Source of the DNA: Orbicella franksi
Taxonomy: Eukaryota
NCBI GenBank assembly: GCA_964199315.1
Contig: OZ116712.1
Location: 11,718,001-11,782,000, forward strand
DNA length: 64,000 bases
Direction: 5' to 3'
The position numbers and the translations under genes are program-made. Below, piece after piece: positions 38,801 to 62,652 of this stretch; positions within the stretch are counted from its first letter, which is position 1, and each line of letters opens with the position of its first letter. Under the pieces are notes generated by a model. That model had not been told where the DNA came from, searched no databases, and saw only the letters and a program-made list of their open reading frames with translations.

Positions 38801-41800
38801 ACTGTAGTGATATTGGTAAGGATTTGGGTAACCCATATATTTTACTCTGACTCTCTCTTTCTTATGTTTTAACATTTTAAGTCCTTTCCTCATTGAATGT
38901 TTTTCATCTATGGTAGTCCACTTTTAGTTTTTGTCTTTGTTTGATTTGGCTTCCCTTAATTAAGAAAACAATAAGAACCAGACACATTGGAAGGGGAAAC
39001 CCACACATGTATCACTAGGGATTTGGATATCCCATACCTTTTGACATTTCTAGTTCTTATTCTCCCTTGAATCCCTTTTGTTTATTTAAGTTTACTTTAA
39101 CTTTTTATCTTTGGTCGATATGGCTACCCTTAATTCAGGAAATGGTAACAACCAAATGGATTGGAAGGGGATACCCATATTACAACTGCACTTGGGATTT
39201 GGGTATCCCACTGTCACATGACTGTAAATACAATTTTCGTATAGGACTTTGTTGCTTCACAACTCTGCCTATTACTAGAATATATTTTCTCCCAACTAGC
39301 TGCAACTGCTGTCTCAAAATTTCTTGCACATTAACTGTACATTTTAGTCCATATAGTACATATATTTTGCTTGCACACTGTACATTGAGAGGGACATGGG
39401 GGGGGGGGGGTCTGGACACCGCAACACTGCAAAAAAAAATTAACGAACACCGCATCACCACGAGAAAAGTCAACAAAACACCATCAGCACAGCACATATT
39501 TTTAGCGCCATGATTCATTCATCTGCACTTCAAGTAGAATAATAATTTAATACCTCAACAATTTTCCACAAAATAAACACATCACAACATTCTTCATTGC
39601 GCATATGTCAATACTGCTGATGCCTGTAAATCAGTTTTCTCGCTCTTGTGAAGAAACCTTGCGTGAAGCTACAAAGCGGACAAAGAAAAAAGAGAGGAGC
39701 CTCGAGAGATGGCCTTTACCCCAGATCCCTCTCTTCTTTTATATTGATATCTTCGATATTGATAATCGTTTGAAAAAAATAGATGGTCAAGAAAGTCACA
39801 GGACCTTGGAGCGGGTATGGACCGGTATCAGAATGACCTCAAGACAAAACCGACTAGCAAAAGGAAAAAAATAGTAAACGTGTGCAAGTTACAAAGCTTC
39901 CTTAGCCTAGAAAGCCTTCCTTCTTCTCTCGTAGAAAAAAACTGCGCAGTCAATAATACATTATATTCGGCCTTGGCATTTCCAGAATTTCCAAGATTGT
40001 TTCTGTCCTCGCTCCTCCCCGGAACACTGAGCTCCGGGTGGCATAGGTCAAGTTACTTGTCAAGTTATGTATAAATGAAAACAGCTTAGGATTGGTAGCC
40101 GAAGCATAGTAAAGATTGACTACAGACAGTGATGGTCTGTATTTTGTTACAAATTATTAACCTCAATGGTACATGATTGTCATAAGTTAGCATGGATTAA
40201 TGAAGTTTACATGCTAAATTTAGGTCAAATTTAGGTTTGAAAAAGGTAGATCAAAAATCCCAGCACCGCAAACAATTTCATTTCACCGAACACCACAGCG
40301 TGAAAAACACAAACATTGCACACCATAGGGTTTGAGATAAGCACAACACCGCAAGTTGAGATTTTATTCACCACATCACCACATTGAAATAACATCAATA
40401 CCGCAACACCTCAAATCCCCATGTCCCCCTCTACATTGTATGTGTAATGCAAATGTACATGTTTGGTCCTTATGAAGCTTTTAAATGTTATATCATCAGG
40501 TGGAGATGTACCAGTCCCATTCCTTTCAAATGCAGTGTTTATGACACACAAATGGTTTATTTCCTCCGAAGAGCTGCTTAGAAAGTTTATGCAAAGGTAT
40601 TAATTTCATCCTTTTATTCATTGCTATATGATTGTATGACTGAAGAGAAGAATTGGGAACATTCCCCATGAGGAGGGAGATACATGTAGTGCATTTTTGT
40701 TTGTGATTTAGGTATTAGTTTTTGGTGTAGTGTCTCAACATAATCTGCAGTATTGTATTTATAGCTGTTTTGGGTGGAGCAGTATGCTAGAGCTGCAATG
40801 AAATCGTTAATAAAGGATGGGTTACAGTGCGTTTACTGAAACCGGGGCCACCCAGACAATGAAAACCAATCAGATGGCAGAACTGAAACAATAGATTCCA
40901 ACATTTTCAAATCCAGCCAATGAAATGTCCCGTACAAAACAATGAAATCTAAACTTGTTCGTTGTGATGCTTATGCAATTATGGTGTCGCATAATAAATT
41001 GTCAAGCTCAAGCAGTACTTTCGCGTTAGAAAATACTGTGTTACTTTACTTTAGATTTCACATTTACAAGCGTGATAAACTCATTAGATCGACCGTTTTC
41101 CAGCTGTGAACATACGGCCACACAAAATATCACTTTTATGGTTGTTGTTTAAAATTTAGAATAATGGATTTTGACAATTTTTACAAAGTAAATTCCACTC
41201 CTGCTGTCTGTGCACGTTTCTATTTTTACACACCTTTCAGTTGTCCACTAGGCAGTTCTTGAAAAAACCATCCTGTTGACTGTCTCAGGAGCTCTACATT
41301 TCAGAGTTTGGGCTCCCTTTGTGGGTTATCAGTGTAGTGAAATAACATCTTCATGAAAATTCAAACGACTTTTTTTTGCTGCGTTGTACTATCAAAGCTT
41401 CAGCTTGTAAAATCACTCAAGCAAAAACAAAAGATGGACACAGGAGTTTACCCTGCATGGAAAAATCGAAGACATTTGAACAAAGAATTCATTTTTGTAT
41501 CAAGTTAACTTTTCAATTCTCCTGCTTGAAGTTTGCTTTCAGCTCCTTTCAGTTACATCAACAATAATCCCTTCCAATTCATACATTATGAACCTGCGTT
41601 CATGCGAAACTGCTCAGAGACCATTTGAAGGGTTTCTTTTAAACAGCTGCAACAACATTCACACAACGCACTCTGTTGTCAATATATATTTACAAGTCAC
41701 ACCCTTACGCAGCTATTATTTCCATGTATTTTCCAAACCAACCAACGATCCCATACAAAATGTAGCATACAATTCTTCTTGAACCCACAAGCACGCGAAA

Positions 41801-44800
41801 CTACTAATGGTTTGAGCTTGACAATTTATTATGCGACACCGTAATTGCTTAAGCATCACAACAAACAAGTCGAGATTTCATTGTCTTGTACCAAACATTT
41901 GATTGGCTGGAATTGAAAATGGGACATTTGATTGGCTGGATTTGAAAATGTTGGAATCTATTGTTTCAGTTCTGCCATCTGATTAGTTTTCATTGTCTGG
42001 GTGGCCCCGGTTTCAGTAAACACACTGTAACTCTAACTGGAACTTGCTGATGAGTGCTGAAATGTAACCCACAAAGTGCATGTACATAGATGTTGTCCTC
42101 AGATAAAGTATTCTTTTCATGAGAGTTACATTTTTTGCCTGATATGAGAAGTCTTGAAATTATTAGCTTTTTTCCAAACAGTATTCATTCCCTGAACACT
42201 TTTGCACTTTAGGTACTCCAACCATTCAGCACTAAACAATGAACATATCAGAAAATTCAAAAGAAGCATTTGCTCTGCTGTTGGGTAAGTATACCGAGAC
42301 CTTCCAAGAGGGGTAGCCATGTCACCATGTCCCCATGTCCCCATGTCACCATGTCGCCATGTCCCCGTGTCACCATGTCCCCATGTCCCCATGTCCCCAT
42401 GTTCCATCCTTTCTTGTACTGATGTCACCTAACCAGTGAGGCATAAAATGTCGCTGTTGTTTTTCTGCATGAAGTCATATGTCGCTGTCGTTTCAAGATT
42501 GATTTTTTTTTTGAGCTCATTCACTAGAAAAGCACACAAGTCTCTGACATTTACAGACTTTACAAGGTAATACGATTTCTAAAAAGGCAAAAAGTTAAGA
42601 AGGGTTGATGTCACTGTCTTTTCTAGTGCTTCTCGTGTTGCTGTCAAATTTTAGCGACACATTCAATTTGATTGTTGTTGATAATAGCAATTTGTGTGTT
42701 GCTTGTTTTTGGGGTCATGTCGCTTGCCTCTATACCCAGTACGTGCATTTATTTTACAATTGCAGACCCATTGCTACAAATATATCATTTATACATATTG
42801 TAGGTCAGAATGAAATTCCTTTGTCTCTTAACCCTAATTATTCATGAATCATGAATATTAGGGTTAGAAGACAATTGAAATTGATAATCAAACTGGGTTA
42901 AAATCATTTTAACCTGAATTTCATTTTGACCTACAACATATACATGTTGAAGTAATTAGGTACTGACTAAAATAATGTTGTATAGTAAATGAATGTCCCA
43001 TGTTCTCTTTTGTAATACAGTCAAACCTCTCCACAATAGCCACCTTGGGGACATGCTAGGAAAGTGGTCATTGTAGAGAGGTTGCAGTCAAGGGAAGGTG
43101 GGGGACTGCAATATACACCATTTTTTCCGGGGTTTGCAAAAAAAAAATGCTTATTGATGTAGCATATAAATATGTAGCACAATCAAAATGTATATCAATA
43201 CAAAACAGAAACGAAACAGAAACAGGTATAACAACATGCTGTACAGATTAGGTTTTGTGACCTTTTACACTAAAAAAGAAATTGGTGTTCAGAGGGGAGT
43301 GTATGGACACCATTCGTCAGTCACTGATTAGTACTGGCTATTGTTAAGAGGTTATTTTGGCAGTTAAGGGATGCACTTAAGTGGTCATTGCTGTTGTGAA
43401 GAGGTAACCACGGTAGGGAGGCTAAAATAAGTTAGAGTGAATGTACAATGCATTGACTGTCCTCAGGGCCAAAAAAAGTGTGCAGCTATTGTAGAGAGGT
43501 GACGTTATCCGGTTACTTTGTTCCATGGTCACTTCATTCCAAGTCACTTCATTCTATCCGTTAGTCACTTCGTTCCATCAAAGAGTCACTTTGTTCCAAA
43601 GAATAGTCCCTTCAATTTGTTCCAAGGGGAAACCTTACAAATCTTACCAATCTTACAGGGCTACTAAACACCTAACGCGGATAGAATGTCAATTCGATAC
43701 AAACTTCTAGTTTACTTACAAAAGTAAACTAGAAGAAATATCCCAATGAAAGTGTTTAATCTTTGCATCAGACCAAAAAGATCCCCAGGACTTGGAATTT
43801 GAAATTGCAGCAGACCATATCCCATCAGAGTTCCTGAGCACTGACATCAGATTGCAGAGTCAGAGACACCTAGTTTTCGCCACCGATCTGCAGTTCGAGT
43901 TCCTTGCCCGTTCAAAGTCTTGGTACGTTGATGCCACATTTATTAGCTGTGCTGTGGAGTAACTCGTTCGTAAATGAAGATTCAAAACAGACCAAGCATT
44001 CGTTAACTTCAAATTTTCGGAAAAATCTATCGAGAATAAAAGTTTAATAGTTTAAATATAGTTTGCCTCTGGAACGAAGTGACTATTCTTTGGAACGAAG
44101 TGACTATTTGGTGGAACGAAGTGACTCTTTGATGGAACAAAGTGACCGTAAACCGAGGTGACAGTTAGTAGAGGTTCCTCTGTATCATTCAGTATAAAGG
44201 CATGGGTGAGTGGGTTATTAAAGCGTTATTATTTGTGTAGAGCAGATTATTTTGATATTGAAATTTCTTTTCTTTGTTAGTTTGTTAACATAATCATTTT
44301 ATCGTCTTAGTTAAGTCTAATGTAAGTCCTCTGGGTTTTTTTTAAGTATTTTATGTACTGATAAGAGTTATTGTCTGTCAGTTACATTTCTAATTGAGTT
44401 AAACTCTTTTAGTGTCTAGTTACTTTTGTTGGAATATTCTATCACTTTTGACATTCCCATGTTTTAAATTTTACCAATATTTGCTAACAACATATGAATT
44501 TTGATGACCTCACAGAGATCAAACCGTCGCTTTTTTATCACTAGTTTCTAACAATTTAACCCATTTATTTCGAAATGCTTTTTTGTATGGACCTATGGAC
44601 ACTCATGTTTTATTTTACAGATTTTGGATATCCAGCTATGGTTCTGACTTCAAAAAAGATGAGCAACTCACCGCATTGTTGACTGAGTTTCATGAAAAAG
44701 TAGAATGTGAAGAGGAGAAAGATATCATTCATCTGTCCAATCTGTAAGAGCTACTATCAGTCACATATGTTATATGATTCCAGGAAATACCAAATGCCCA

Positions 44801-47800
44801 TGCTGAGGAAGGACGTTAGAAATTCTGATGGGGACTAGCACAGTTTCAAAACCCAAATCTGGAATTTCTGAGTGGTGGGGGTTCTTCTCAAAAAACTTCC
44901 CTGGGAAGGGTTGGCATGTTTTCTGGAATTTTGTACATCTAGTGTTTTTTACAAAAGTGCTCCCTTGGCTGTAGAATATTGAGTCATTTAAAGTGTGACA
45001 AGACGAGTAGGTCATTGACACCTCCAAGCTTTATAACTACTAGTCTTTGAAGCATGTCTACTTCCCCTATTAAAAAAAAGCTGCAACTGGGATAGCAATC
45101 TTGAGGCGAAATATTTCATGTTTAATTGCCACTAAATTTGTCATCCATGAGTTAATCTTTCTCAAATGAGCCATCCTTGTTTACAGTGCCGCTCAAAAGT
45201 AAGTCACCACCTCTCGTCTTGTGAGACAAGAGTCTCATCTCAAGAGATGAGAGACTGGTCGCGCAAGACCAGAGTCTCGTCTTGTGAGAACCAATGAAAC
45301 GTATATTTTGGAATAAATTACAGGCAATTGGCTTCCGAGGAAATAGTTAATTTCTCACAACGCATTTGTTGCAATGTATGCTTCGAGAAGTTCCCGATAA
45401 TACAGCGTCTTGAATTGAAACTTGCTTCGCTAGATTCAACACTGTCATTACAAACGAAGAACTTTAATGGATTGGAGTTATGAAGAAAAGAAGTTACAAG
45501 TATGAAGAAACAAACACCAAGATGTCAGCGAACTATTGTGTAACATTGCATCACACTGGTTGGTGAAATGTTCTACATGTAGTTTTAGGCTTTTATTGTG
45601 TTGAATTTCCATGTTACATGCGTGCAAGCGAATTGAAACGAAACTGTGTTTTGTAAGATCGGTACTATCGCCAGAATTAAACAAGCTGATTCGTTATGGA
45701 AAGCGCTTGATAAAGTTTCAATCTTTCTCCGATTACTCAGAGTTATTCCTCGGTGCATTGAATTTGCATTTCATGCCTGTGTGAGTCCATTGAACTGGAA
45801 CTCATTGTTTTCTTTACAGATAAAAAAAATTAAACTTGATCACATAACAAATTGAAAATGTGACTACACATTGTTTCATAACAAACACATGTGATTGGGA
45901 AAGACGTGTCGAAAGGAAAGGATTCTTTACGGCGACCAGAAAATTTGAAAGAAGTATTTCTCGCCAAGCTAGGCTATAGGCAGCAAGTGGAATGGGGCTC
46001 TTCATATAAAAAGATTAGCTGAGAAATATAGTTCAAAACTGAGCAAGTGAATGGGAGATGGGAATATTAATAAAACGTTACTCCAGTTTTGTAATACATA
46101 TTTATTACTATTACAATTTATACAGTATACTGCTACTAAGTGTAATACTTAGAATTATTGTTGATATACTACTACTTGTTACAACCAAGTGTACATGTAA
46201 TACTAAAAATCCTAAGCAAGCATACTATAAACTGTTTCATGTCCTTCAAGGTTAATACTAATAAGCAAAAACCTACAAATTTTTCGTATGACAATATATT
46301 TGAAAACATAATAAGTCAATAAAGCATGTGACAATGACAGATAAAGAAATTTTTCCTTGGAGAAAACATGTAGTTCAAACCAAATAAAATCCTGCAATTC
46401 AGCAAACTTAATTTCTAATTAACTACCTTTTCATGAACCCTACATTTCCCAAAAATTATTGTTGCCTGTTACCTTTTCCCAGTGCCCTGCGTAAATACTC
46501 GTCTATCGCGACAATGCACTTGCACCATTGTGCATCTTCCTGTGCTTGTCTGCAAGGATACAACTTAAACACATACTTTCTAACTATACCCAGCTTCCCT
46601 TGATCTAATAGCATTTCCCCCCTTGTCCCTGAACAATTTATTTCAGCCGTCCAGTCCCCAGGTTGAAAAATAGTTTCAACAATTCTCTTGCCAAGCTGAG
46701 TTTCAGACGCAAATGGGAACAGCCGAAGTTCAAGGGTCGTGCGAAACATCCCTACAAAGTCCATGTTTGGACTGGGATTTCTAAACGCGGTGCAACAAGG
46801 GTCCTTGTGTTTACTGGAAACATGCATGGACATCAAGTTTTACGTCAAAGAAATTCTCGGCAGAACCCTGCTTCCTTTCATCTGAGCAACATTTCCTGAC
46901 GGCCACAGATTCCAACAAGACAATGACCGGAAACACACTAGCAGGCTCAGGTGAAAGAATTCATGAAATCAAGTGGGATTTACTGGTGGAAGATGCCTCC
47001 CGACAGCCCTGACCTCAATCCCATAGAGATGCTATGGCATGAGCTAAAACATTTTCTGCAAACAATAGTAAAGCCCACAACTAAAGAGCAGCTACTCGAA
47101 GGAATAACGAGGTTCTGGAAGGAGAGGGTGACGGCTGAAAAGTGTACGATGTACATCAATCACTTGAAGAAGGTTGTCCCAATGGTGATCCAGCACCAAG
47201 GCCTTAGGGCACTGAAAACAAAACGGTTCTTTTTGAGAACAACAATGGCACCTTTAGGAGCCACATTCAATAAAAGTCATGACCAATGCAATCCAATCTC
47301 TTCCCTTCAAAAAACCCCTGTAAACTACTTTGAAGTATTCATACTACATGTTAGTCTGTTGATTCCAAATTCACTTAATTGTTGAATTTGCTTACATGTA
47401 GCAAGAAAGTTAAAGTCAGTTGAGCAATCTGAAACGGAAAAAAAGAGATGCTTTCAAAGTATAAACTGGCTTCCTATAAGTTTTACATGTGTTAGCAGAC
47501 GTTTAAAAGTCAAAGAACTAATGCTTTATTTTATCGAATTCTGTCAAAATCTGTGAGGGAGTTCAGTCGATCAATGGAATGCTTTTGGAGAATGCTAGGA
47601 CGAAACAGAAGTCTTTCAAAATATGGAAGAGGAAGAGCTTTATAGAAGTTTTAATTGCAAATGTTTATCCAGTCAAAAACCAAAAATTAACTGCTGTTGG
47701 TTATAAAATTTGTTTGTCGACCATACGTGGCAACAAACCACTTCTGTTCAGTCGATCAATTGAAACTCTGGAAACAAATGACGCTTTTAAAGTGCCTATG

Positions 47801-50800
47801 AAGTAAAAATAATTCCTGCTTATTTCAAAGTCTTTTCAAAGTAAAAAAGAATGGCATTTTCTTTTTTGGAATATCTTTTTTCGTTTTAGAGATACTCACA
47901 TTTTTGTATTATGCAAATGAGGAAAGTGATGACTTCGTAGGCGGTTCCTCTAAAACAGCACAACACTCAATCGAGAATAACTCTAGAAATATTCAAGCAG
48001 TGTTCTTCAAACTTGGCACCAGCAATGTACATCACAAAAGAAACTGAATGACACCTACGATGCTGTTGCCAAGGCAACACTCTTGGCTCTAGTCTCTTTC
48101 TCTGAAAAACCAAATATCCCCATTTGCAACCTTTTAAAGTGGGACAGAGGGTCTTACTCAGAACACACATGGTTCCCATATTGTCTTAACTCTCCCCATT
48201 AGATTGGTGGGAGTGGATGATCCTTGTTTAAGATAAAATCTGGGAATTTTAGTCTTTATTAAAACAGAACCAGCGGCATAACTGTTGTCATGGCAATGGC
48301 ATGACAGGTGTCATTATGTTTCTTTGTTCTGTACATTTCTGGTGCCAAGTTAAAAGAACACTGCTTTAATATTTCTAGAGTTATTCTCGATTGAGTGTTG
48401 TGCTGTTTTAGTGGAACCACCAATGACGTCATCACTTTCCTTACAAAAACGTAAATATCTCTCAAACGAAAAAAGATATTCCAAAAAGGAAAATGCCATT
48501 CTTTTTTACTTTGAAAAGCCTTTCAAATAAGCAGCAATTATTTTTTACTTCATAGGCACTTTAAACATGATCTAGATTTGAAAGAGTTCATAAACAAATG
48601 TTTACCCAGTAAAAGAAGCACATTGTAGTCCCTTAAATTAGTTGTGTTACTGAACACGCTAAGAAGCAAAGAGTCAATAACGCCTGTTGATCATCGATCT
48701 AAATGATCAATTTCGTCGACCTTGAAAATGTGAATGACACAAAAGCCAAGAACTGGCTGTACATATTTGCCTTCAAACATGAAACTGTTAAATATTTTCA
48801 TCACTGCTTTCTTCCAGGTCTACAAACCTTTCTAAATGACCGGTAAAAGTCAAGTTAATAACTTCAATATCCACAACTTTCGCTTTATATAATTGCCAAA
48901 AGAGGAAAACTTTCTTCGTACAGGTTTAAGCACTTTTCCTTAAACCCATGAATGACGTGAATTCCATTTAAATTAGAAAGCTTTGCAGCATATTCTTGGA
49001 TACGATTTTTGAGCCAAGTAGATTTGAAAAGTTTAAGAGTCAAATCTCAAGTGATTGTAATAAACAAACAACAGAGTTAGGCAAACACTTCGTTGGAGGG
49101 CACGAAGTTATGCTTGGCTAATTCTCTGCGTGCTTGCAAGTTCGCATTACAATAGGCTATTAAAATCTTGCGAGAAATTCAAGCAGTGGCGCTTACAGTT
49201 TTTTTAAGCTCTCGCAAGATGAGAATCTCGTCTTGCGAGATGGTGGTAACTTTTGAGCGGTACTGTAGTTTTGTCTTGTTAGACTGATTTCTGTGTAGGA
49301 AATCAATGTTTTCAGAGTCTTATTTGTGAGAAAATCATTTGGGTAGCCTTACTACTTTTTAGGAGCATACATGAGTGCAGAGCAAAACAAAAACAATCAT
49401 TATCAATAAAATTTAGGTACTTGTTGATGCACCAGCAGTAGTTTGTTAGTTCCTCGTGATCGTGGTGTGTTATTTCAATTTTGCAAACAGCTGTGCTGAG
49501 GGAATGAGGAATCGTGCTTTAAGTGGTCTTACAGGCACTGAGCACCCTCCCTTGGATCAACGGAAAAGTTCTTTGGCTTTCAAGGACATATCAGCTAACA
49601 CTATTGCAGAGCAACTAACATATCTTGAGTACAGAATGCTTCGTAGAATACCAGTAAGTATGCACATTTTGTATACAACCTGATGGTTTGTTTTCTCATG
49701 TTAAAATCTCAACTCTTCTGTAGGTTAGTATTTCAGTTGGCCCTCAGTGAGGTTAGTCAATGCAAGCCCTGAGTTCCAAACTCATTGAAACATGTTTAGA
49801 CTGCTAATATTTGGCCTCAACTCAGGAAAATGTATTCGTAAATGTACAAATAGTATGGTGATTGGAGACAAAAGAAATTTATAACCAAGACAACATATAA
49901 CAACATTTCCAGGGTTGAGGCTTCTACTGGATTGGTAATGGTGGTGCTCCTGTTTCTCAAAGATGGACAGTTTGGTTACTTGAGAAACCTCTTAAGTATG
50001 TTTTTTTTTCATCAGTGTTTATTTATTTTACTTAATACCAAAAAATAAATAGTGGTAAGCCCAGGCTAGCACTCATAGGAGACCACTGAGAAGATGAATG
50101 TATCAATCAGAATGTTCTGTGGGCTTGATGTGTGACATTTTCGATGGAGACCTTTATAGATTTTATTATCAATGTGGCTTGTGTTTGTGGCTGATATAAT
50201 GGTCATCCTGATTGGCTACTGCCAAGAGCAGTATTCTCCTGTAATGCCCACAGGCCGATTACAGGCCTGCAGAAACAAAGTAAAAAGCCATATAACAAAC
50301 TTTGAACTTTCTGTCTTTACCGGAAAGTCTCAAACCTTGGCCTTGCCGTGTTGACCTCACTATCACTCAATCAGTATATGGCAAGGTCTCGGTTTGAGAT
50401 TTTCCTATAAAAACTTCACTCTTGGTTTAATTGGTAGTTAATATGTAAATAACATTATTTATTAGTTTTCAGAGTGGAAGACTTATGTTTGCACTGGAAA
50501 ATTAGGGGAAACAACTTATCTTGAGAGATATGTAGCTCTTTTCAATGGCTTATCGCGTTGGGTACAAGCAATGGTTTTGAACTGTGTTACACCCCAGGAG
50601 AGAGCTTCCTGTATGGAAAAGTTTCAGCAAACAGCCAAAGTAAGTTATAATTTTCTCTTAAACAATCAGATACCCATACTCAAATACCTGGAAAAGCAAC
50701 TTGAAGTTCACGGTTTTGTGCAGTGGGGTAGGCAATCAAAAACCAGGTTGAGTAATGTTGACAGGGCATTGCTTAAGGTAGCACAGGCAACTGTTTCCCT

Positions 50801-53800
50801 GTTTAGAAGTGAATATATGAAATATCATATAACTGAACCATGGAGAAAGATATGACGACATTATTGTTCATCGCAGCTATATGCATTGCACAACTTAAGC
50901 AGTTGTGAGGCTGAATCCTGAAAAAAAATTGAGACTTGAACAGGATTCAAACCCATGTCCCCTGTGATACCGGTGCAGTGCTATTTTTTCCCAGGCTTCA
51001 ATAACTGATATTGTTTTACAACTGCTTAAGTTGTGTACATACTGTAACTGCGATGATCAAACATTTCTTCATATGTTTCCCTGTTTCTTATCAATATGTG
51101 TTGAAGTAAAAAAGATACAAAACCGGGAACAATGTTTAAAGGTTGGCAACACTACCATCTTGATCAATTCTTGAAGCTTTGGTGGAGGCAACAATTCCAG
51201 CTTAAGAGGAACTAGCTAGGGCCTACATGTACTATCTTGTCAAGTAGAAATGCCAAATGGAACAAAAATTTTGCAGAATTTCCAAATTTGTGGATAAAAG
51301 ACAACCTCAAGAAGTTGATCAGAATTGTCTGTTCTGATGGATTTTGTTCTGGCATTTCTGGAAATTTTGGTTAAATTGAACACACATATTATATCTGGTT
51401 GTAGAGATGTTTTGAATATTCTGTTGTAGTTCAGGAGTCTATAAATCACGACCTTGTTGGGCAGGGCAGTACATTTAGGTATTTCTGATAAGAGGAGAAA
51501 TGGAAAAGGGCAAAAATATAGCAAGCTAATTAGATGCCCTTGTTTTCCATTTCTCCTCTCACTTGTCTACTTTATATTTATCTTTGTAATTTTAGAAAGG
51601 AATAAATAAATAAAATGAAAAAAAATGAAAATTTCTGATAAGTACCTACAAGGTATTGATGTGAGGCAGAAAATTGTAGCACAATTGCTAGAAAGTGTTA
51701 CAATATCAGGATTTAGCCGCTTAACAAACTCCAGACAATATTTTGCTATTCAAGGTACATATAACCAAAAATTGTCCATATTATTTATTTTTCCTTATAT
51801 ACAGAATTACATACGTTGAGCTAATGGTGTACACATAAGACACAAGGTTATTCCTTGTCATAGTAACTAAGAAAAGTCTTTTGATTTTTGCTGTGGTCAT
51901 TGTGCTTCTTTCTTTACCAAGCATTTGAAGGAACTCCAGAATTTTAATGGTTTAATGGCAGTGGCTGGAGGACTGACAAACTCAGTGTTGTCACGCTTAC
52001 GACAAACTCAGGAGCTACTCTCAGAAGATTGTCGCGAGGTACTAATTCTTCCACCCAGCTAAACTCACTCAGATTATAGTACAGTTTGATCTCCCATATC
52101 AAGGACCCATTAACTGATTAATGCACACGCTCACACTTGAGAAAAATAGCGTGCAAATTTGGTTACAATTGGATGTTTTTTTCTTGGTGTTTCCCAAAAT
52201 GCAATGTAAAAAAGTAACAGCAAAAACAAATAAGAAATAAGAGAAAAACAGAGAAACAAGTGAAAAAGAAAAAAAACTTATCTCCGCGTGACTATCATGT
52301 GCTTTGTTTGATCTTATTGGAGTGCGGCTAGTAGTGTGAACTACACAAGCGCTAATAGGCTAAGTTCCAATAGAAACCAGGAACACTAATCTGTTTTCTT
52401 TAAATACCAAAAGAAATGCAGGTTTTTCATGGAAATATAGCTTTGCATTCAATATTTTGAAATCCTCCCAAAATCTGACCTTTTAGAAATGAAACAAAAG
52501 AATTGAAGGCTTTCGTGCAAAAAGGGCGTATATAGCATTTTGGGTCGATTTTTATCTTTTGCAGGATCGAGCTAGTTTTTGGCAGACTGACTCGTTTTGA
52601 CATGAAAAGCATCGTTGCATAATTGTTCTTGTTGATTTGCACTTCGTTTTTGAGAAATAACGTATGCAAAAAAACTCAGTTTTCCGAGCGGCATCTTTTG
52701 GAGCGAATCCTTCCAAGGTGAATTTTGACGCAGCACAAACTTCAACGGTTACTTTTAGCAGCTTCAACAGCACGGTTTTTTTTTAAATAGATGTTTTGAT
52801 TTTTGAAAGAAGTAGAGAAAAAGACCGGAAAAAAAAAATCGACTGACCTGGTATTGAACCAGTGTCACGACAAAACAAACTTGAATCTGGCCCGTTCAGC
52901 GCCTTATTTGCTTGCGCTAATGAAGCAACAGTAAGAGAATTGCGTAATTATATGAATTATAAAACTAGCAGCAAATACCACGCTTCGGTGACTTTATCAT
53001 TTAGCAAAACAAAGGTTTCTTTTGTTTTTCGCTCAACAAAAGATCTCCAAAAGATACCCTTGGAAAACTGAGTTTTTTGCATACGTTATTTCTCGAAAAT
53101 GAAGCGCAAATCAACAAAGACAATTACGCAACGAGTACAAAACAAGTCAGTCTGCCAAAAATTAGCTCGATCCTGCAAAAAATTAAAATCGGCCCAAAAT
53201 GCTATATACACCCTTTTTGCTTGAAAGCCTTCAATTGTGAATAGCAACAGTACTGAGGATTAAAATTGAAATATTAATTAAATCAAAGAATCAATTAAGT
53301 ATTATGCCTCGGGGAGCCTTTACATTTTTTGTGTCACATGACCATAGGCGTGACCTGATGAGGTCTTCACTGGTGTTACTGATCATGAAAAATTAAAACG
53401 CATGAAATAACTCTGAACTAACTGAAAATGATGAGGTTATATGAGAATAAATTTTCCGTAGCAATGGCTCAAAAAGATCAGTTATGGGTCCTTAAAGCAG
53501 ACATGCAAACAGCAGTAGTTAGCTTTAAAGCCAAATACATTCATTTAATAAATAGTAAAAATAAAAACAGATAAATACCATTGCATTTACAACCAATCAG
53601 CATTACCAGATGCGGAGGGATTATCACTCATGCCCATGATGTTGTCACTGATTGGTTATGCACTGGTATTTACCTATTTATTTCTATTTCTACAGGATTC
53701 AAAATGACTTAAAACATAAACAGATGACTCATAATTACATTGAAAGACTGCAGCCCTTGCATGAAGTGTGTCTGACTCTCTGTGTTTGTTTTTCTTTAGT

Positions 53801-56800
53801 ACCTCAAACTGTTAATGGAGTTCTTGTCTTCCAATGGAAACTACGCATCCTATAGGAAAACCTTGAATAACTGTACTGGATTCTATATTCCTATTTTGTA
53901 AGTTCTAGACTAAGAATCATACTTGCAAGTTGCAATTATTACTATAATATTACTTGACAAAATGTTACCGAAAATAAATTTTTTCAGTTCAGCTCTGGAT
54001 TGAGCACAAAAACATGCATTGATCTTGGTGACTATGCAGCACTGTTTGTATTGCTGGCAAGAACAAAATTTACTTCAACATTGTTTTTTCAGTTTACCGC
54101 TCGCAACTAAGACCACCACCCTTGCTTTAGTACATGCAGTGACAAGTTATCAGTGAATTTACATTCTTTGGAGATGCCACTAATATTCCATGACTCGTAT
54201 GCATTGACTCAGGATTATTTTGTTGATAAAGTATTGTAATTGTGACAAGGTTGGTTTTGTGCTCAATCTGTTCATATTTTCTCTATTCTGTTTTCTTCAA
54301 TCCTCCATCTGCTGTAACATACCTGTGTTGGGAATGAACACAGAGGTGAGTTCACAAATTTAGTACATAACAATATGTTTTCCCACCACTGGTATATAAT
54401 TTTAATATTTAGAGCAAAGTAATTAACCCACATATAACATGTATGTGGCTAAAAGATTAAGATGATTTCCGCAGAACATTCGAGCAACAATGGCAAAAAT
54501 TAAGTTACCAAAGAAGCCCCGTGGCATGATAATATTCTGAATACAGTTAAGAAGAACTTATCGAGACTTAAGCTCTTAAGCTGACCCCACGAGAGAAAAT
54601 TAAAGTTGAAGTTATTCATATTTCAATTAAAACAGACGTTTTGCATTAGTTAGAAACACAATAGCACGCGCTTTGAGCATTCTCACGAGGTTTGACATTA
54701 ACTTTCTTGAGAATGCTTGAGAATTTAATCGTGGGGTCACTGGGAGAAATGAACTAAAGTGAGTTGTTTTAAGGTAATTCTTCTGAAATAAAAGTGACAG
54801 TAGATGTTTGTTCAAACTTTGCCCACTGAATATTTGTCATATGATAACTTAAATTTTGAAATAAAAAGGGGGGTGCCCATACTCATTAAGAAGCAGTGAG
54901 GCATTGAAAATGCCCCATTTTGGCATTATTTAATGCTTATTATAAGAACGCATTCCCAGTAATTGTAAAATCTTTGTGAGCCCAGACTCATAAGGACATG
55001 CATTAAACTGCAGTCAATACATTGTGTCGGACACAAATAAACATTTTAAGTTTGATTCAGACAAAGCTAAATCCTTGATTAAAAATTTGAACCAAATTTC
55101 TTGACGTGGTACCAAACTGCAAAATAGAATAGACCACAGTGTATCTGCTATTTTTCTTATTTATTCAATTTTCAGCAATAGAAATTAGATCAGTCTTTTC
55201 TCACACAAAGCTTATGATTAGTTGATTACAATGACTGGAAAAAAAATTGGGGTGCCTGTGCTCGTTGGTGAGCTAGAGCCATTTTTCAACTAACAGAGCC
55301 CAATATCAAGGCAAATCCGTCATGTTTTCAATATGCGCATGCACGAGCGTGCGCTAATGACGCCATAAATTATGCGCAGTAAGGATGCGCGATGCAAATG
55401 TGAGGAATGACCTTAAATGGTATTCCAAAAGTTACTGTGTTATGAGTAGATTTTTAGTGAATAATTTTTGCACTTATTGCTCGAACTTTGAGCGGAATCC
55501 GTCTTAAGTAGTTCATTTAATACAACCCCAGATGTGATGGACAGACAAACAAATTGACTGACCCATGGACTGGTTAAATGACTCACTGACATTGTTTCAA
55601 TGATACAAAACAAATTAAAGAAACAGATACAATAATTACTCTATGTACATATACAAGCTACTAACAAATAAACACCAGTCATTGTTCCAGATAAATGAGC
55701 GGTCCCAGGTCAAAAACCCGACAAGATCGGCTACATAACCCAACAAATTAATGGAAAATTTACAGTGATTTGGTGGGAGCAGTGGGAATTGACCTATTGG
55801 ACTTCGTAATGACTAATTGACACCTTGTCTTGAAAACTTGTCTGTAACCCTACCAATACATTGACTCCCTGTATAACTCACTGATTGAATTGCAGAATGA
55901 CTGAGGGCATACGGTGCTGTGAAACTCTATTAATCACAGTGAGACTGAACATCTGATTTGGTGACAGCATCTTGAATTATTTAATACTAATACTTCTACA
56001 GGCATTCAGTTAAAAGATCTTATTGCCTTGCACACTGCGCTCCCTGACACCGTGGATGGACATCTCCTTAATGTACAGAAGATGATTCGTTTATCAAATA
56101 TCATGTCACGACTACTGCAGGTGCAAACCTCACTTCCAGCTTTGCAGCCAAATTTGGAACTCATCAAAATGTTACGGGTAAGATTGAAATCAAACCAATT
56201 TAAACTTAAAATTCCATGCACTTTTGTTACACAGTTCAAGGGATAAAATTAATACTTTCTAAATTTTGGTATTTTAAAATTAAATTAAATGTAGTTATTG
56301 TTTTGTTTCTTTTGCTATGCAGTCAAACTTCCTGTCGGCAATTACCTTAAATGTCAAACCTTGATGGTCACTTATGCATAAACACTAGAGAAGTGATTTA
56401 AATTTTTGAATTTGATTGGGAAAAAAAACTAATTTTATCTAAACAGCACAACTTACTCTAGGCCAGAATGCAAAGTATAAATTAAAATTATCCTATTTCA
56501 GACTAAAAATTTATATCCCCTTATGGACCATAACTGTATAACATTATGTATAATATTAAAATGGGTTTAATTAATGTTTTCCTCTTTTTTGTCAGAATAA
56601 TCAAGATTATTTCGGAAAATATTCACATTAATTCTGCATCTATAGTTAAATTAGATTACCCTGATATTTAGTGTCTGCTAAGTTTGCACTTTCACTACAC
56701 TGTGTGACTAAAGTTTCCATTATTACTGAAAGGTCAAAAAACAATACTAACAATTGCTCCACCTTTTTTGCAGGTCTCACTACAACCCAGACTCACAGAC

Positions 56801-59800
56801 GAAGAGCTGTATGAATTATCTCTTGCAAGGGAACCAAGAATGCACAGTCATTCTGTAAGAAAACTAGTGATGCAATATTCATTCCATTACATCTTGAAGT
56901 TTTATGATGATTATTTTGGTATTTACGCCTCATAAGATGTCAGCTAGTGATCTCCCGACCATTATTTTGAGGTGTGAAGTCATGACTGAAATTTTTCAAT
57001 CCCTGACCCCTTCTCCTGAAGTAATATGAAGTGAAGATAGCTGGATTTTGAAACTTGCCTCATAAAGAAGAAAAAAGTTTGGCCATTATCCTGTCATTTT
57101 GACACCACGGTTGGTCAACAACCCATATAGCTATAGTTGCTAATTTGCTACCCTGCTAATTTATTCTCGATTATTTTGAATATTCTTTCCCCATATTTAT
57201 TTCAAACTCAAAAGCATTTCCCTTGGGTCTGCCCTTCAGTCATTTACTATCAGGTATTTCGAACTCCCACTATTTCAAACTACTTTTTGTTTCCCCTGAG
57301 AATTCAATATAGCAGGGTTCAACTGTAGTCTACATCTTAACTTGTAAGCTGCTTGAAGCTCGCGCAGTTGGACGTGTTCTTTGATGAATTTTGCTCAACT
57401 TACACAAGTCATCCCGATGATACAAATAAGCAATGTGTAAAGCTATAATAAAGAAAAAGCCCCTTTAAAGACTTTGTGAGGGGCTGAGAGGCAAGGATAA
57501 TAAAAATATTATCTCTATTGGAAAAAGAATGATTTGTTTTGTGACATAATGAAGGATGACAGTGCCTTTGTGATCACTTTATTAAGAGCTGTGCAAGTCT
57601 TGGAAGTGTAGAGTCAAGTGGTGAACAATATGTGATGTTTGCTGATTGGGCGGCTGGATTGTTAGACACAACACCTGATCCTGTGACATCCGAGAAACAT
57701 GTTGCATCCATGGTGGAGGTTGGTAGCATATTTGTTAAGTTAGAGGAATTGCTTTTTGGCTCTGTGTCAAAAACAGTCTTCGTGCGAAACCATTGATATG
57801 GAAATGTGTTCCCCCTACAGGTTCATTTTCATACAGATCAAACTCATTTTCATATAAAAGGGTTTGCATGAAGACTCGTTTTGAAACTGAGGCACAAGGC
57901 AGCGGCATGTAGGACCGTTACTTGGAACAAAGCAAAAGACAAGAGGCTATATTGTTCCCAATAACGATCCCACAAGCCACTGGGAGATTGAACTCGCCCC
58001 AGATTTCCTCTCGTTTTTATAGTGGCAAATACTGACAGGGATGCTCTTATGTAAAACAACTTTCAGGTATTAAAATGCCTGTTTCTTTACCACTTAGGCC
58101 CTGGACATATTGACATTTTCACTTACCTGTGGCTATAGTTGAGTAAACGTATGTTAATAGAGGGATTGTCCATGTAAACAAACCCTCTTTTTAACTTGGA
58201 AAATCCTGGTTGTGGGTATGGATGGGAGATTCGCTTGATCCTACCTTCGCTCTTTCACTCCTTCGCTTCCTGTTAGACTTTTGCTAAAGTGTCTTGTTAT
58301 ATTCGACGTGGAGGTGTAACGATTTCCTCACCGAGTGAGACGATCCATTTTCCTAGTTGAGTGGCTCAGATTCCGCTCATAGCCACTTTGATTCTATGTT
58401 GAGGTTGTTTGGATGTATCATTCAATTGGGAGCCACCGTAAGAGAAAAAAAATACTGTATGAAGGAAACTGAACACAAGTTTAGAAAAACTGATGATAAC
58501 AAAAGAAATGTGATTCTCGTCTCTTAAATACCATTTATGTAATAACCCGGATATTTTGACGGTAACTGGCCATCCACGAGCACTTAAGAACAGGCTGTCC
58601 AGAATCTTAGCCTACCGTAAAGTCATCTAGCTAACGTAAGCCTGCGTGAATTTCTGTTGTTTACTCCCAATGTATATTATTTCAATTCACTAGGTGGCTT
58701 GTAGCGCACCCACTGATGACAGTGCTTCTTGTATTAACAAGTGATCCCACATGTTTACTTACTATTTTCTTGTATTCTGTGTAGGCTGTGTTCAAAGTTT
58801 ATGACACAAACAAAGATGGTTCAATATCAACAGAAGAGTTTGATGCAATTGCTACTAATTTTCCATTTATTGATTCATTTGGAGTTCTCGATGTTAACCG
58901 GTGAGAATTTGGTTTGCTATTTGTTCTTAAGTCTCATCAAATGATTTAATGTCCAAGTAGTTACGTAGGTTCACGCGCTTCACACACAAGGTTTACGCTC
59001 ATGGCGCTCCGCGCCTTTCGAATAGGGAAGAAACAACAACTGTTTGGCAGTCTAAGTAGTTACGTAGACTGCAAAACAGCTGTATTTTTACGTTAGACAA
59101 TTAAGTATGAATATTAATGGCGCTTTCAATTCGACCAAAATTCCAGTTTGAATTTCTGCACATTTGTAATGGCGAATGGAACAGTGTTTCCTGGAATTTC
59201 TAGAAATGATGACAACCTTGCCAGGTATACCAAAATTTTCGAAATTTATTAGTGGAACTTGAATTCGGAAATTCAACAATTCTCACGGATTTTTCAAAAG
59301 CTTTCAAGGACATTCCCTTTTGCCCCAGTTTCGAATGTTACAGATTTAATAACAATATACACTACCATGCAGTACCTCTTCCCCTGCCTTAAAAATGTCT
59401 AGTAAAATTAGCACTTCCACTGAAGTTTTGTTAAAGGGTGAAAATGACTGAGTTATCGCGACACTCCAGTCTTACCAGAAAACCATTCAAGGTAGCTAGT
59501 GTACTGAATGCAATGAATTTGTCGCCTTTTGCCAGATCTTAGCCCACTTTTCAGAGTAGCTTTTACAATATAAAATGCTCTACATTCAGTTAAATTATTA
59601 TATGTCACATGCGTGTGCAAACCGAAACTCAAATGCTTTTCTTAATCAAGTTTATCAAACTTGCAGTTCGTGGTAGACTTTGTGTGTCTTCGCTTTTTTA
59701 GCTCAAATGGCTCTGTGTTGTGAAGTAACGGTCACAATTTCGCAACTTGATAATTTCAAGTTATGCATGCCTAATCCGTGATCAGGGTGTGCTTTAGTTT

Positions 59801-62652
59801 GCTCATTACGTCAATAATTTTCAAGTTAATAAACAGAAGTAACTTTGAGACTGATTTGATGTGACGGCATTTTCATTGTGTAGTGATGGAGTCATCAGTC
59901 GTGAAGAGATGAAGAATTACTTTATGAAAGCACACTGTCACGAGTTGAGTAAAGGCTTTTCGCACACCTTTCAAGAAACAACGTACTTCACACCAACCTT
60001 TTGTGACCATTGTGCAGGCATGGTAAGGAACGCATTTATAATTAAACTGTATAGAGCGTATTCTTTCACGTGTCCAGCAGCCATGCAAATTTATTGGAAC
60101 GAACGACAGTCTTTACATAAGAAAAGAGTTGAACTCCCACAGGATTGGTTTGGTACGCCAACATGGCTGTCGTGTCATTCTTTTGGAACACCAATATGGC
60201 TGCCATGACGTCATGTGCATGCGTTCCACAGTCAGGAACATGAAGAAAGTGCTTGTTTCTTTTGCCGCCATCTTGCCAATTGTAGTCTCATTAGATGGTT
60301 CTTTCTTCGGCTTTCATTCCTGTCTTCCTTCCTTCCCTCCTTCCCTTCCGTTCTTCCTTCCTTCCCAGTTTCCTCCCTTTTTCCGTCCTATACCCTTCCT
60401 AACTTCCTAACGTCATGCTTTTTCTAAATATCTTTCAGCTATGGGGAATCATCAAGCAAGGATACAGGTGTAAAGGCAAGAATTTTTAAGTGGTGTTTCA
60501 ATGCAATGCCCAAAATTACAAACAAAAGAGAATCGCAATTCCTAGTTTGACAACATTTATGCGTATTGGGTACAAAGGAAAAAACTCCTCAAATGGAGTC
60601 AGTGTTGTTCTCCTGAGCGATCTTTTAAGAGCGTTATTATCACCCATTGACTTTGCTTATTTCTACCGACGGTTAGGTCGCCTTCACTTCATGATCTGAT
60701 CGTTAGATACAACACAATGGCACGTGTTGGCCTTGCAAGGAGAAATCCGTCATTATTGGGTTTTTGGATTACAAATACCTAACATTGCTAAATTTGACTC
60801 ATATCCTTTCAACAGTCCATTAAACCAATTTGACTACTTTCCCTCGTTTTCTATGGGCAGCCGTCGCTTATATTCCCTTTTTCATATTACCTCTTCACTT
60901 CCCTCACTGCCATTTTATTGCGTTCTTCCAGTTTGTCACATTAATTGCCACAAGAATTGCAAAGGAGAGATAGTGAGAGGATGTCGTCAGAAGTCGCCTA
61001 ACCAGTTGAATGGTAAGAGTAACTCCCAGGATCCGACGGAATAGGCTTTTATTATATGGCTAGCTCCGTGAGCGGGCAAGATCAACTGAATACTACGCTG
61101 TGATTGGCTACCCGAGTGGGCAAGATGGTGCCATCTTGCCCGCCCGGGATTACCCGCCGTGTGTAATAAATCCTTTATTGACCAAGCTTGTTCAGTCAAT
61201 ATGGCTGGATATTGGTCTCCTTTTATTTTTCCGTATTTATGGACCTCCACTCCGTCTTGGTCTTTAAACACGGAAAAAAATAACTTGGCCAATATCCAGC
61301 CATCTTGACCGAACAAGCTTGGTCAATAACCAATAAATCTTTCCTCAGTCTTTTCTTAGGATAGAAAAGGCTTATCTCTCCTCGGTGAAATCACTAGGAT
61401 TGAAATAGACTCGTCTTTAATTACTCAATTGGCTGTGATTGAAACAGGCTCGTCTTTGCTTATGCCAATCCCTAGGATTGGAATAGGACAGGTTTCATAA
61501 CCAAGGAACTACTACTATTCATAAATGGGGCTTCTTTTCAGAAAATATAATTAATTGTTCTACTTACTGTTTCTTCATCAACTGTTTCAGGCGTAGAAAA
61601 GTCTCCTTACAAAGTGGACACACTTAGAATTGCCAAATGGAAAAACAAAATGAAGCTCCACAAACAATTTTCCGAGGAATCCCTGAAGTCTTTAAATGGC
61701 GAGTCTGTCAGTGTACCAGTAGATCAGTACAAACAACTTCTTCGTGCCCAGCAGGTCAGTAGATAAAAGGCCGTACTACTTCGTTGATAGTGTTGACACT
61801 CATTGAAATTTACTGGGCTTCTGTTGCCAAGAATTTGAACAGGATCTTTGCCCTCACCTTAATAAAGCTCTTATGACTGATGAAATTTGTCTCCAGTTTG
61901 AAGACACTTTTCTTTTCCATTTTTCCGCTCACTACTGTTTTTTCCACCCTCTGTATTCATTAACACTGGTTACGATTGACATCTCAACAACAAAAATCAC
62001 GTGATTTTGTTCGGGCACACAGCAATCGCGTTGAGGTCAGGAAACCCTGTTCTACACTGAAAAATTCACATTCAAAGTTATTTAGCAAATTGTTTCGCTT
62101 TTTTTCCTCTGGTACCTCAAATTTAAGGTAGCGGAATCCTCTTGGTGGGATGGGCAGGGGAACCAGCGAAGTACACTTTTTGTTGTGACCTCCAAGAAGC
62201 ACTTCTGTTATCAACTAAACCTTTTCACTCTGCTATAAACATTAACTTACTAACAAAGAATAATAGCTCCTCGGATCAAACCTTGTTGTGTGCTCTCCGA
62301 GTTATTTTGTCAGCGAACAAAGGATATGGTCTTTCATTTCCTTTGCACAGGAGGTTGTCTGATAGCGCATAGTTTTCCCTTGATAATTAACAAAGTAGAA
62401 ACACTCTGTTTGTTGTTATCATTATCATTCTTAAGCTGAGTTTGTGTCACTTGATTTTGTTTTTTTCATTAAACATTTTAGGCAAATGAAGCAATCCTGG
62501 CGGAGAATGTTCGTCTTCACAGGGACTTACAAGACGCCACACACAAGTTAGGCTTGTTGCAAAATCATCTGAATTCTCTGAGACAAAACACTGTTACTTT
62601 TATCTTGGAGCAGATGGATGCTTTACAGATGCAGAAGGATACGGAGGTATAG
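35882..62652 (+). CDS. RASGRP1: RAS guanyl-releasing protein (RasGRP/CalDAG-GEF family), 690 aa: REM, CDC25 GEF, 2 EF-hands, C1, C-terminal coiled coil
   Basis: Exons: 35882-36011, 40500-40596, 42213-42284, 44621-44743, 49491-49653 ([17 protein letters not shown]), 50466-50639 ([15 protein letters not shown]), 51922-52038 ([14 protein letters not shown]), 53800-53897 ([12 protein letters not shown]...FYIPI), +2 nt (see findings), 56002-56177 ([10 protein letters not shown]), 56774-56854 ([11 protein letters not shown]), 57587-57718 (ADWAAG), 58785-58900 (EF loop [12 protein letters not shown]), 59884-60022 (EF loop spanning the junction [12 protein letters not shown]; [17 protein letters not shown]), 60439-60475, 60932-61012 (CHINCHKNC), 61591-61754, 62482-62652. 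Total 2073 nt. The symbol is family-level; one-to-one orthology to a vertebrate paralog is not established. Confidence 0.92.
38136..38702. mobile_element. Non-autonomous element with G/C-run termini and 8-bp TSD (hAT- or P-like)
   Basis: TSD GCAAAGGC at 38128-38135 and 38703-38710; termini CCAGGGGGGG / CCGCCGCCGGG; internal ACCCTGTTTAGGAC repeats. Confidence 0.7.
39388..40432. mobile_element. Element with AGAGGG...CCCTCT termini and 6-bp TSD
   Basis: TSD ACATTG at 39382-39387 and 40433-40438; TIR AGAGGG(GG)ACATGGGG; subterminal (A)CACCGCA repeats. Confidence 0.65.
40825..42027. mobile_element. Tc1/mariner-type MITE with ~200-bp TIRs
   Basis: TA|CAGTGCGTTTACTGAAACCGGGGCCACCCAGACAATG...CATTGTCTGGGTGGCCCCGGTTTCAGTAAACACACTG|TA. 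Confidence 0.8.
42316..42403 (+). repeat. 9-bp minisatellite (CCATGTC(C/A)C) x ~10
   Basis: Directly visible tandem array; accounts for the spurious [11 protein letters not shown] at 42126-42428. Confidence 0.9.
43018..44182. mobile_element. TA-flanked CAGTCAAACCTCT-type MITE with a nested MULE
   Basis: TA|CAGTCAAACCTCT...AGAGGTTCCTCTG|TA. Confidence 0.65.
43510..44155 (+). mobile_element. Internally deleted Mutator-like (MULE) element
   Basis: Termini CGGTTAC / GTAAACCG; GTCACTTCGTTCC subterminal repeats at both ends. 43771-43941 reads [57 protein letters not shown], resembling a MULE transposase up to the first catalytic D (WYxDGTF). Confidence 0.7.
46456..46692 (-). pseudogene. BEN-domain coding fragment, 5'-truncated
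   Basis: [68 protein letters not shown] fits the BEN pattern (hhxxhF...SG...LDxxKLxxh+xxh...aP...Wxxh...Ixxxh+). The frame is open to its stop. Confidence 0.7.
46684..47210 (+). pseudogene. Tc1-like DD34E-type transposase, 5'-truncated and frameshifted
   Basis: KLSFRRK...[22 protein letters not shown]; [24 protein letters not shown]; [22 protein letters not shown]. Two frameshifts and one stop; D-to-E spacing about 34 after correcting the frameshift. Confidence 0.85.
47791..48560. mobile_element. Non-autonomous TTAA-target (Kolobok-like) element, copy 2, nested in the Tc1 element
   Basis: TTAA|AGTGCCTATGAAGTAAAAA...TTTTTACTTCATAGGCACT|TTAA; homologous to 1610-2397 along its length. Confidence 0.8.
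50868..51056. repeat. Small foldback enclosing a tRNA 3'-half-like core
   Basis: About 40-bp inverted arms (TCATCGCAG...CACAACTTAAGCAGTTGT). The core 50929-50982 on the - strand reads GCACTGCACCGGTATCACAGGGGACATGGGTTTGAATCCTGTTCAAGTCT (degenerate B box). Confidence 0.55.
52501..53235. mobile_element. MITE with ~190-bp TIRs and a tRNA-Leu-like core
   Basis: Left AATTGAAGGCTTTC...ACGTATGCAAAAAAACTCAGTTTT; right AAAACTGAGTTTTTTGCATACGT...GAAAGCCTTCAATT. Confidence 0.75.
60324..60412 (+). repeat. (TTCC/CCTT)n-like pyrimidine low-complexity tract upstream of the C1 exon acceptor
   Basis: Visible degenerate TTCC repeats. Confidence 0.75.
61048..61335. mobile_element. MITE-like repeat with internal palindrome
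   Basis: TTATTGACCAAGCTTGTTCAGTCAATATGGCTGGATATTGG and its inverted copy CCAATATCCAGCCATCTTGACCGAACAAGCTTGGTCAATAA. Confidence 0.6.

Follow-up and report, generated by a model that had tools for sequence, protein, structure and literature searches.

A constitutive exon of only two nucleotides, AG, is very probably present at positions 54344-54345 of a 64,000-nucleotide stretch of the coral Orbicella franksi (assembly GCA_964199315.1, contig OZ116712.1, positions 11,718,001 to 11,782,000 of the forward strand; the whole stretch is hereafter called the window). This microexon lies in a gene of the RasGRP family, its two flanking introns would be removed stepwise, and the arrangement would have been inherited from before the cnidarian-bilaterian split. 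The two bases are present in the mRNA, from 54344-54345 or, formally, from 56000-56001, and they restore the invariant IPILG-(I/V)xLKD motif of the catalytic CDC25 domain. The AG/AG/GT element (acceptor AG, exon AG, donor GT) is under selection.

The two-base deficit and the intronic element

The exon at 53800-53897 (exon 1 in the comparison below) ends with the letters CCT ATT TT, and the donor GTAAGT follows at 53898. The next acceptor, ...ttctacAG, has its AG at 56000-56001, and the following exon (exon 2) reads GC ATT CAG TTA AAA GAT from 56002. Direct joining of TT to GC leads to a frameshift into a stop. When a G is placed in front of the exon from 56002, its translation starts with a glycine and aligns from this residue onward with human RasGRP1 (4l9m, residues 308-365), and the exon 56002-56177 also matches the structures of RasGRP2 and RasGRP4. 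The exon was found to be single-copy in the 497-Mb genome when paralogues were checked, and the sequencing runs in which it occurs come from corals.

The 2,104-nucleotide interval between the two exons contains acacAG/AG/GTGAGT at 54342-54351, with a canonical acceptor before and a canonical donor after the AG; all splice sites are canonical when this AG is read as an exon. A pyrimidine-rich tract is located upstream, and an AG-free spacer of about 30 nucleotides with a branch-like TGTAAC motif separates the tract from the acceptor. The pattern AG[AG]GGT[AG]AGT has one match in both strands of the window (128 kb), exactly at 54342-54351, and its expected count in the 2,104-nucleotide intron is 0.006. 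The initial annotation of this DNA had described the exon ends, the acceptor, the frameshift on direct joining, and the intronic AG/GTGAGT motif, all of which match the sequence base for base, and the pyrimidine tract that it noted upstream of the candidate is borne out by the base composition (Table 2).

Two additional bases in the mature mRNA

The join from 53897 to 56000 was observed in 11 raw poly(A) RNA reads (run X23), which have 10 distinct starts and show no positional ambiguity. In the same run, the neighbouring junctions were covered by 11 reads (52038/53800), 14 reads (56177/56774), and 14 reads (56854/57587), and the two-base inclusion, seen in 11/11 reads, was on par with these flanking constitutive junctions. 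Furthermore, these four joins recur in a 1,858-nucleotide RNA contig (X35, from a run labelled as another species). The mature mRNA is ...ATT TT-AG-GC ATT..., encoding Ile-Leu-Gly-Ile, which is the reading that the initial annotation had proposed to check. Consistently, the transcript-derived coral proteins P0096-P0103 read IPILG/IQLKD. Neither a TT/GC skipping join nor any other inserted sequence was found among the junctions listed for X23 and X35. The inclusion of AG looks constitutive in this one sample set, in which rare skipping, or skipping cleared by nonsense-mediated decay (NMD), would escape. Run X21 contributes nothing to the junction evidence, as its 12 placed reads are all at repeats.

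The element in orthologous introns

Orthologues across animals were searched with the 59-residue exon and then with the full-length match, and the genomic junctions were read at each locus. As shown in Table 1, six species have the two-base deficit. In all of them exon 1 ends in phase 2, and the first two bases of exon 2 complete the Gly codon. Exactly one AGAGGT was found in each of the six deficit introns (6/6), and none in the two non-deficit species (0/2). In the latter two, Haliotis and Amphimedon, this position is occupied by a single ordinary phase-2 intron. The conservation of AG/AG/GT in orthologous introns, which had been put forward as a check on the candidate, was thus found in every deficit species; together with the TT-AG-GC mRNA, the presence of the same element in five other animals with the deficit supports the AG at 54344-54345, the first choice of the initial annotation.

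Table 1. The exon 1-exon 2 junction of RasGRP genes in eight animals
Species	Group, locus	End of exon 1	Start of exon 2	Two-base deficit	AGAGGT in intron	Intron A/intron B (nucleotides)
Orbicella (window)	stony coral	TT	GC	yes	1	446/1656
Porites lobata	stony coral, L003	TT	GT	yes	1	774/393
Actinostola sp.	sea anemone, L002	TT	GT	yes	1	343/1893
Nematostella vectensis	sea anemone, L005	CT	GT	yes	1	201/405
Dendronephthya gigantea	octocoral, L004	TT	GA	yes	1	105/111
Branchiostoma belcheri	cephalochordate, L006	CT	GT	yes	1	260/1706
Haliotis rubra	mollusc, L007	CT	GGGT	no	0	single intron, 937
Amphimedon queenslandica	sponge, L008	CT	GGGC	no	0	single intron, 55

The context of the element is shared as well. 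A pyrimidine window of at least 17/20 is located within 70 nucleotides upstream of AG/AG/GT in all six species, and YAG stands immediately before exon 2 in 8/8 species. The frequency of AGAGGT was 2.9e-4 per base (123 sites in the 427 kb of all fetched loci, both strands), and at this empirical rate the chance of finding the bare hexamer in all six deficit introns is approximately 2.6e-4. When a pyrimidine window of at least 16/20 and a GTRAG donor were demanded, 6 of the 123 sites remained, the proposed microexons making up 5 of them. The introns gave no alignment between orders, the sole weak match, between Orbicella and Porites, being one that spans the microexon. Since the introns are unalignable between orders, residual homology does not explain the shared element.

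A TGGAA/TGGAT-like motif was observed between the pyrimidine tract and the acceptor in the five cnidarians: ttgGGAATg in the window (54325-54335), cttGGAAAc in L003, catGGAAAc in L002, tttGGATAt in L005, and gatGGAATt in L004. It is not obvious in amphioxus. This motif may be a splicing enhancer or a branch-region element. In the Haliotis rubra intron (L007, about 15820-15830), a zero-length juxtaposition of acceptor and donor, gacacAG/GTAATG, was found approximately 110 nucleotides before the intron 3' end; chance alone may account for it, or it may represent a ratchet point or a remnant of the lost arrangement.

Alternative explanations for the two bases

The two bases could also be supplied by a single non-canonical U2-type intron that runs from GT (53898) to AC (55999), so that exon 2 starts with AGGC at 56000. 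We consider this quite unlikely. Such an intron matches the label GT..AC given by the aligner to the 53897 to 56000 junction, and it requires no exon smaller than any validated in animals. However, the label arises because the acceptor's own AG can supply both bases. In addition, the spliceosome would have to bypass the consensus CAG two nucleotides downstream in every transcript, and no TT/GC join is among the junctions listed. The supposed terminal dinucleotide across the six species is AC, AC, AT, AC, TC, and CC, whereas the YAG before the exon is kept in 8/8. Because the dinucleotide is not conserved, the GT-AC intron is disfavoured. It also leaves unexplained why an acceptor-AG-donor element is present in six otherwise unalignable introns and absent from the two non-deficit species. 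The initial annotation had foreseen that this alternative gives the same mRNA, and that part stands; as an account of the two bases, it is weakened by the variable intron end.

A U12-type intron, to which the RTATCCTT donor belongs, does not fit the junction either. The donor here is GTAAGTTC, where the U2 consensus is GTAAGT, and exon 1 is followed by GTAAGT, GTGAGT, or GTGAGA in every orthologue. The RasGRP junction resembles non-canonical and U12-type introns in that read aligners report GT..AC, and differs from the U12 type in its donor, in its varying terminal dinucleotide, and in having a canonical explanation.

Several observations weigh against the two-nucleotide exon. Since the mRNA is identical under a GT...AC intron, the mRNA alone cannot separate the two explanations. 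The RNA evidence comes from the species group of the window, and the mRNA of the other five species is inferred from RefSeq or transcript-derived proteins, taken from these taxa or from related ones. Neither of the two gene-covering runs has any RNA depth at 54006-54397, and no intermediates or lariats through 54343/54344 or 54345/54346 were seen; for poly(A) RNA at the present depth, the lack of splicing intermediates says nothing for or against the microexon. Finally, the microexon donor is GTRAG in five of the six species, and the Dendronephthya donor, GTATTG, is weak.

An assembly error or allelic variant, in which the true sequence is TAG at 55997-55999 or contains a two-nucleotide insertion or deletion and the window represents a defective haplotype, was the other explanation raised initially. 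One base change would indeed yield a canonical in-frame acceptor, and the DNA check comes from one run (X4). In this run, a DNA contig of an independent study spans 55774-56930 with two differences, of which one is listed (55856); none is listed at 55999. As 162 low-support differences lie outside those listed, the X4 comparison is a good check and not an absolute one; it gives the error no support. Moreover, the RefSeq protein P0156 of Orbicella faveolata reads the intron tail as ...TSTG, i.e. ACA GGC, and its source assembly differs from the window at few residues, the exons being otherwise nearly identical. The related coral proteins P0001 and P0003 have the same ...TST-G reading, and the two-nucleotide deficit recurs in five other genera with independent assemblies. 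Since the X4 contig, P0156, and P0001/P0003 all agree with C at 55999, a TAG/TAC variant is very unlikely, and the ACA GGC of the independent assembly contradicts it.

Restoration of the frame by a longer 3n+2 exon, by RNA editing, or by a translational frameshift is an a priori possibility alone and hardly credible, as ...TT is followed immediately by AGGC in the reads and the contig, an insertion of exactly two bases, and the protein alignment has no room for residues between IPIL and G.

Other exon boundaries were also tried. Extension of exon 1 past its donor was ruled out, as TAA follows at once, and the upstream donor GT in TGTACT was ruled out, as it would remove 10 conserved residues. 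Solutions of this donor/acceptor kind in the models P0015 and P0019 are wrong according to the transcript-derived proteins.

Gene models damaged at the junction

The models P0156, P0007, P0013, P0019, P0104, and P0015 are damaged at exactly the microexon junction. P0156 (450 residues, named RasGRP1-like) skips the catalytic-domain exon at 53800-53897; compared with the window at 50466-62649, its N-terminal third is missing, several stretches of intron are translated, and the C1 domain exons have been lost. The Actinostola model P0019 reads ...EFLSSES/IQLKD, and P0015 reads ...YRKAL/GIQLKD. In the Stylophora model P0007, intron sequence is read into the exon; the Porites model P0013 starts inside the intron; and the Nematostella model P0104 has ILR in place of ILG. 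Models that break at this junction would be expected if predictors are unable to place a two-nucleotide exon. The same cut is seen in a jellyfish-like model, P0168, which hints at the same problem in jellyfish.

The reading IPILG/(I/V)xLKD is found in the transcript-derived proteins and in the RefSeq models of Exaiptasia, Actinia, Oculina, and Branchiostoma. The NCBI pipeline behind these four correct RefSeq models may place the two-nucleotide exon or patch the frame.

Layout of the RasGRP gene and its surroundings

The transcript-derived coral protein P0097 (687 residues) is collinear over residues 1-687 with the window at 35891-62649 in tblastn. The microexon is the only internal break in this map, and the segments are 59-100% identical, the lower values belonging to segments that run on into introns. 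Pfam found RasGEF_N, RasGEF (CDC25), EF-hands, and C1_1, in that order, in P0097 and its relatives, which places the gene in the RasGRP (CalDAG-GEF) family; a coiled coil forms the C-terminus. The features are collected in Table 2.

Table 2. Features of the RasGRP gene around the microexon (positions in the window)
Feature	Position	Strand	Evidence
RasGRP gene, complete; 17 ordinary coding exons and the two-nucleotide exon	35891..62652	+	tblastn of P0097, Pfam and PDB matches
Exon 1, ends in phase 2 (TT), last codon Leu	53800..53897	+	sequence; RNA joints 52036 to 53798 (cut +2) and 53897 to 56000; tblastn
Intron A, 446 nucleotides, GTAAGT...acacAG	53898..54343	+	sequence; single-copy, depth about 38 in DNA run X4
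Pyrimidine-rich tract upstream of the microexon acceptor, 78% C+T	54263..54312	+	base composition
Probable microexon AG, 2 nucleotides; third base of Leu (TTA) and first base of Gly (GGC)	54344..54345	+	mRNA content; unique motif; orthologues
Intron B, 1,656 nucleotides, GTGAGT...ttctacAG	54346..56001	+	sequence; YAG acceptor conserved in 8/8 species
High-copy, transposon-like repeat, most of intron B, outside the splicing element	54398..55573		word depth in X4
Exon 2, starts GC ATT CAG, N-terminal (G), ends ...KMLR	56002..56177	+	sequence; PDB match; RNA joint 56176 to 56773 (cut +1); tblastn

Two blocks in neighbouring RasGRP introns, 54398-55573 and 52438-53613, have a summed contig word depth of 10^4-10^5 in X4, compared with about 38 for single-copy sequence. 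Both blocks are present in RNA too, with many loose ends and internal joints at 54398-55573. In the upstream block, 52438-53613, opposite-strand joints suggest inverted-repeat transposon remnants.

A gene with a RhoGAP domain is located on the minus strand at 32634-35263, head-to-head just upstream of RasGRP. The divergent RhoGAP/RasGRP pair was also found in Porites (L003, 1-1275), Actinostola (L002, 1-1535), and Nematostella (L005, 1-922). This conserved microsynteny may reflect a shared bidirectional promoter region.

Discussion

Since U1 and U2AF cannot occupy a two-nucleotide exon together, exon definition does not apply to the AG exon, and introns A and B would have to be taken out in succession through intron definition, in the manner of a recursive-splicing ratchet point displaced by two bases. 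Removal of intron B first would leave ...acacAG/AGGC as a normal acceptor, and removal of intron A first would create TTTTAG/GTGAGT as a donor; either order works on paper. The acceptor would be the first AG of AGAG, in line with a first-AG rule downstream of a distant branch point. It must be the first AG, because use of the second AG, or skipping, gives TT/GC and a frameshift.

This tandem arrangement also admits a further reading, in which the AG exon, the smallest and among the oldest of the known animal nuclear exons, has been kept since before the cnidarian-bilaterian split as a splicing switch, the first AG being productive and the second AG or skipping leading to a frameshift and NMD. 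We regard this as unlikely. An NMD on/off switch by skipping had been suggested initially and has received no support so far, as inclusion is 11/11 and no skipped form is among the junctions listed. Nevertheless, NMD would hide such transcripts, and one sample set is concerned. If this reading were true, a Ras/Rap activator would carry, in the tandem acceptor cAG/AG/GT, a splicing switch of its own.

With regard to the history of the constitutive two-nucleotide exon, the position and phase of intron A are common to the sponge, the mollusc, the cnidarians, and amphioxus, and of the taxa read, only the cnidarians and amphioxus were found to have intron B. The boundary between the microexon and exon 2 is AG/GY, a typical proto-splice site. 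Since intron A is shared with the sponge and the mollusc, both of which have no intron B, the microexon most likely arose by gain of intron B: a second intron would have been gained two nucleotides downstream of an old phase-2 intron, at AG/GY, before the cnidarian-bilaterian split, and would have been lost later at least in the Haliotis lineage. Independent gain of intron B in cnidarians and in amphioxus is the alternative, and the state of the sponge may be primary absence or loss.

Animal microexons are 3-27 nucleotides long and include a neuronal programme that depends on SRRM3/4. To our knowledge, the surveys and tools for animal microexons have a lower limit of 3 nucleotides. Short animal exons include the 3-nucleotide micro-Ex8 of Drosophila hth (PMC7392893) and the constitutive 4-nucleotide exon of MPC1 (PMC9929638). 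The RasGRP exon resembles animal microexons in its very small size, in the strong splice sites on both sides, and in the extended intronic region upstream of it, and it resembles the MPC1 exon in being obligatory and not a multiple of three. Unlike animal microexons, it lies below the 3-nucleotide survey limit, shows no sign of tissue-regulated inclusion, and is neither symmetric nor protein-surface-tuning.

Validated exons of sub-codon size are known outside animals. Constitutive exons of one nucleotide have been described in APC11 and VPS55 of plants (Guo & Liu 2015, PMC4674806; Yu et al. 2022, PMC8831610), and a further one has been validated in CYP621A of Fusarium (PMC12940212); according to Guo and Liu (2015), the smallest exon characterised before APC11 was 3 nucleotides (PMC4674806). 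For these ultra-short exons of plants and Fusarium, failed annotation, reads misplaced by aligners, and strong GTRAGT donors are likewise described (PMC4674806, PMC8831610, PMC12940212), and stepwise removal of both introns is the model proposed for the APC11 exon (PMC4674806). The RasGRP exon shares with APC11, VPS55, and CYP621A its sub-codon size, canonical sites, strong GTRAGT donor, constitutive inclusion, and role in keeping the frame for a conserved motif. As in these genes, it is conserved over a long evolutionary distance, missed by annotation, and mis-mapped by RNA-seq aligners. In contrast to them, it has two nucleotides instead of one and belongs to an animal nuclear gene, in cnidarians and a chordate. 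Unlike the APC11 exon, which is known from a splicing assay, it is known here from sequence and mRNA reads.

Ratchet points in Drosophila were reportedly described by Hatton et al. in 1998. Zero-nucleotide recursive splice sites are found in long Drosophila introns (Duff et al. 2015, bioRxiv 10.1101/006163; PMC8605326). The RasGRP element is similar to these in that a pyrimidine tract, YAG, and GTRAGT are juxtaposed inside an apparently single intron and removal would take two steps. However, a zero-nucleotide ratchet point, where AG abuts GT, leaves nothing in the mRNA, whereas two coding bases are retained in RasGRP. Since the Dendronephthya sub-introns are only about 100 nucleotides, the RasGRP element is not a long-intron device.

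Nothing relevant to a 2-nucleotide exon or a RasGRP microexon was found in the literature searched. As far as we found, the validated ultra-short cases are those of plants and Fusarium, and the RasGRP exon is the first of fewer than 3 nucleotides in an animal nuclear gene and an unusually ancient one. The microexon accounts for the mis-annotated RasGRP models of several cnidarians, among them the RefSeq model from the genus of the window. More cases could be found if GT..NN junctions, or conserved frame deficits of one or two nucleotides, are re-examined for an intronic AG/N(N)/GT. The AG microexon would be a natural substrate for the study of stepwise, intron-defined splicing, and Nematostella, one of the species with the element, is genetically tractable. 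On this reading, the animal spliceosome can faithfully process such exons, which can endure over hundreds of millions of years.

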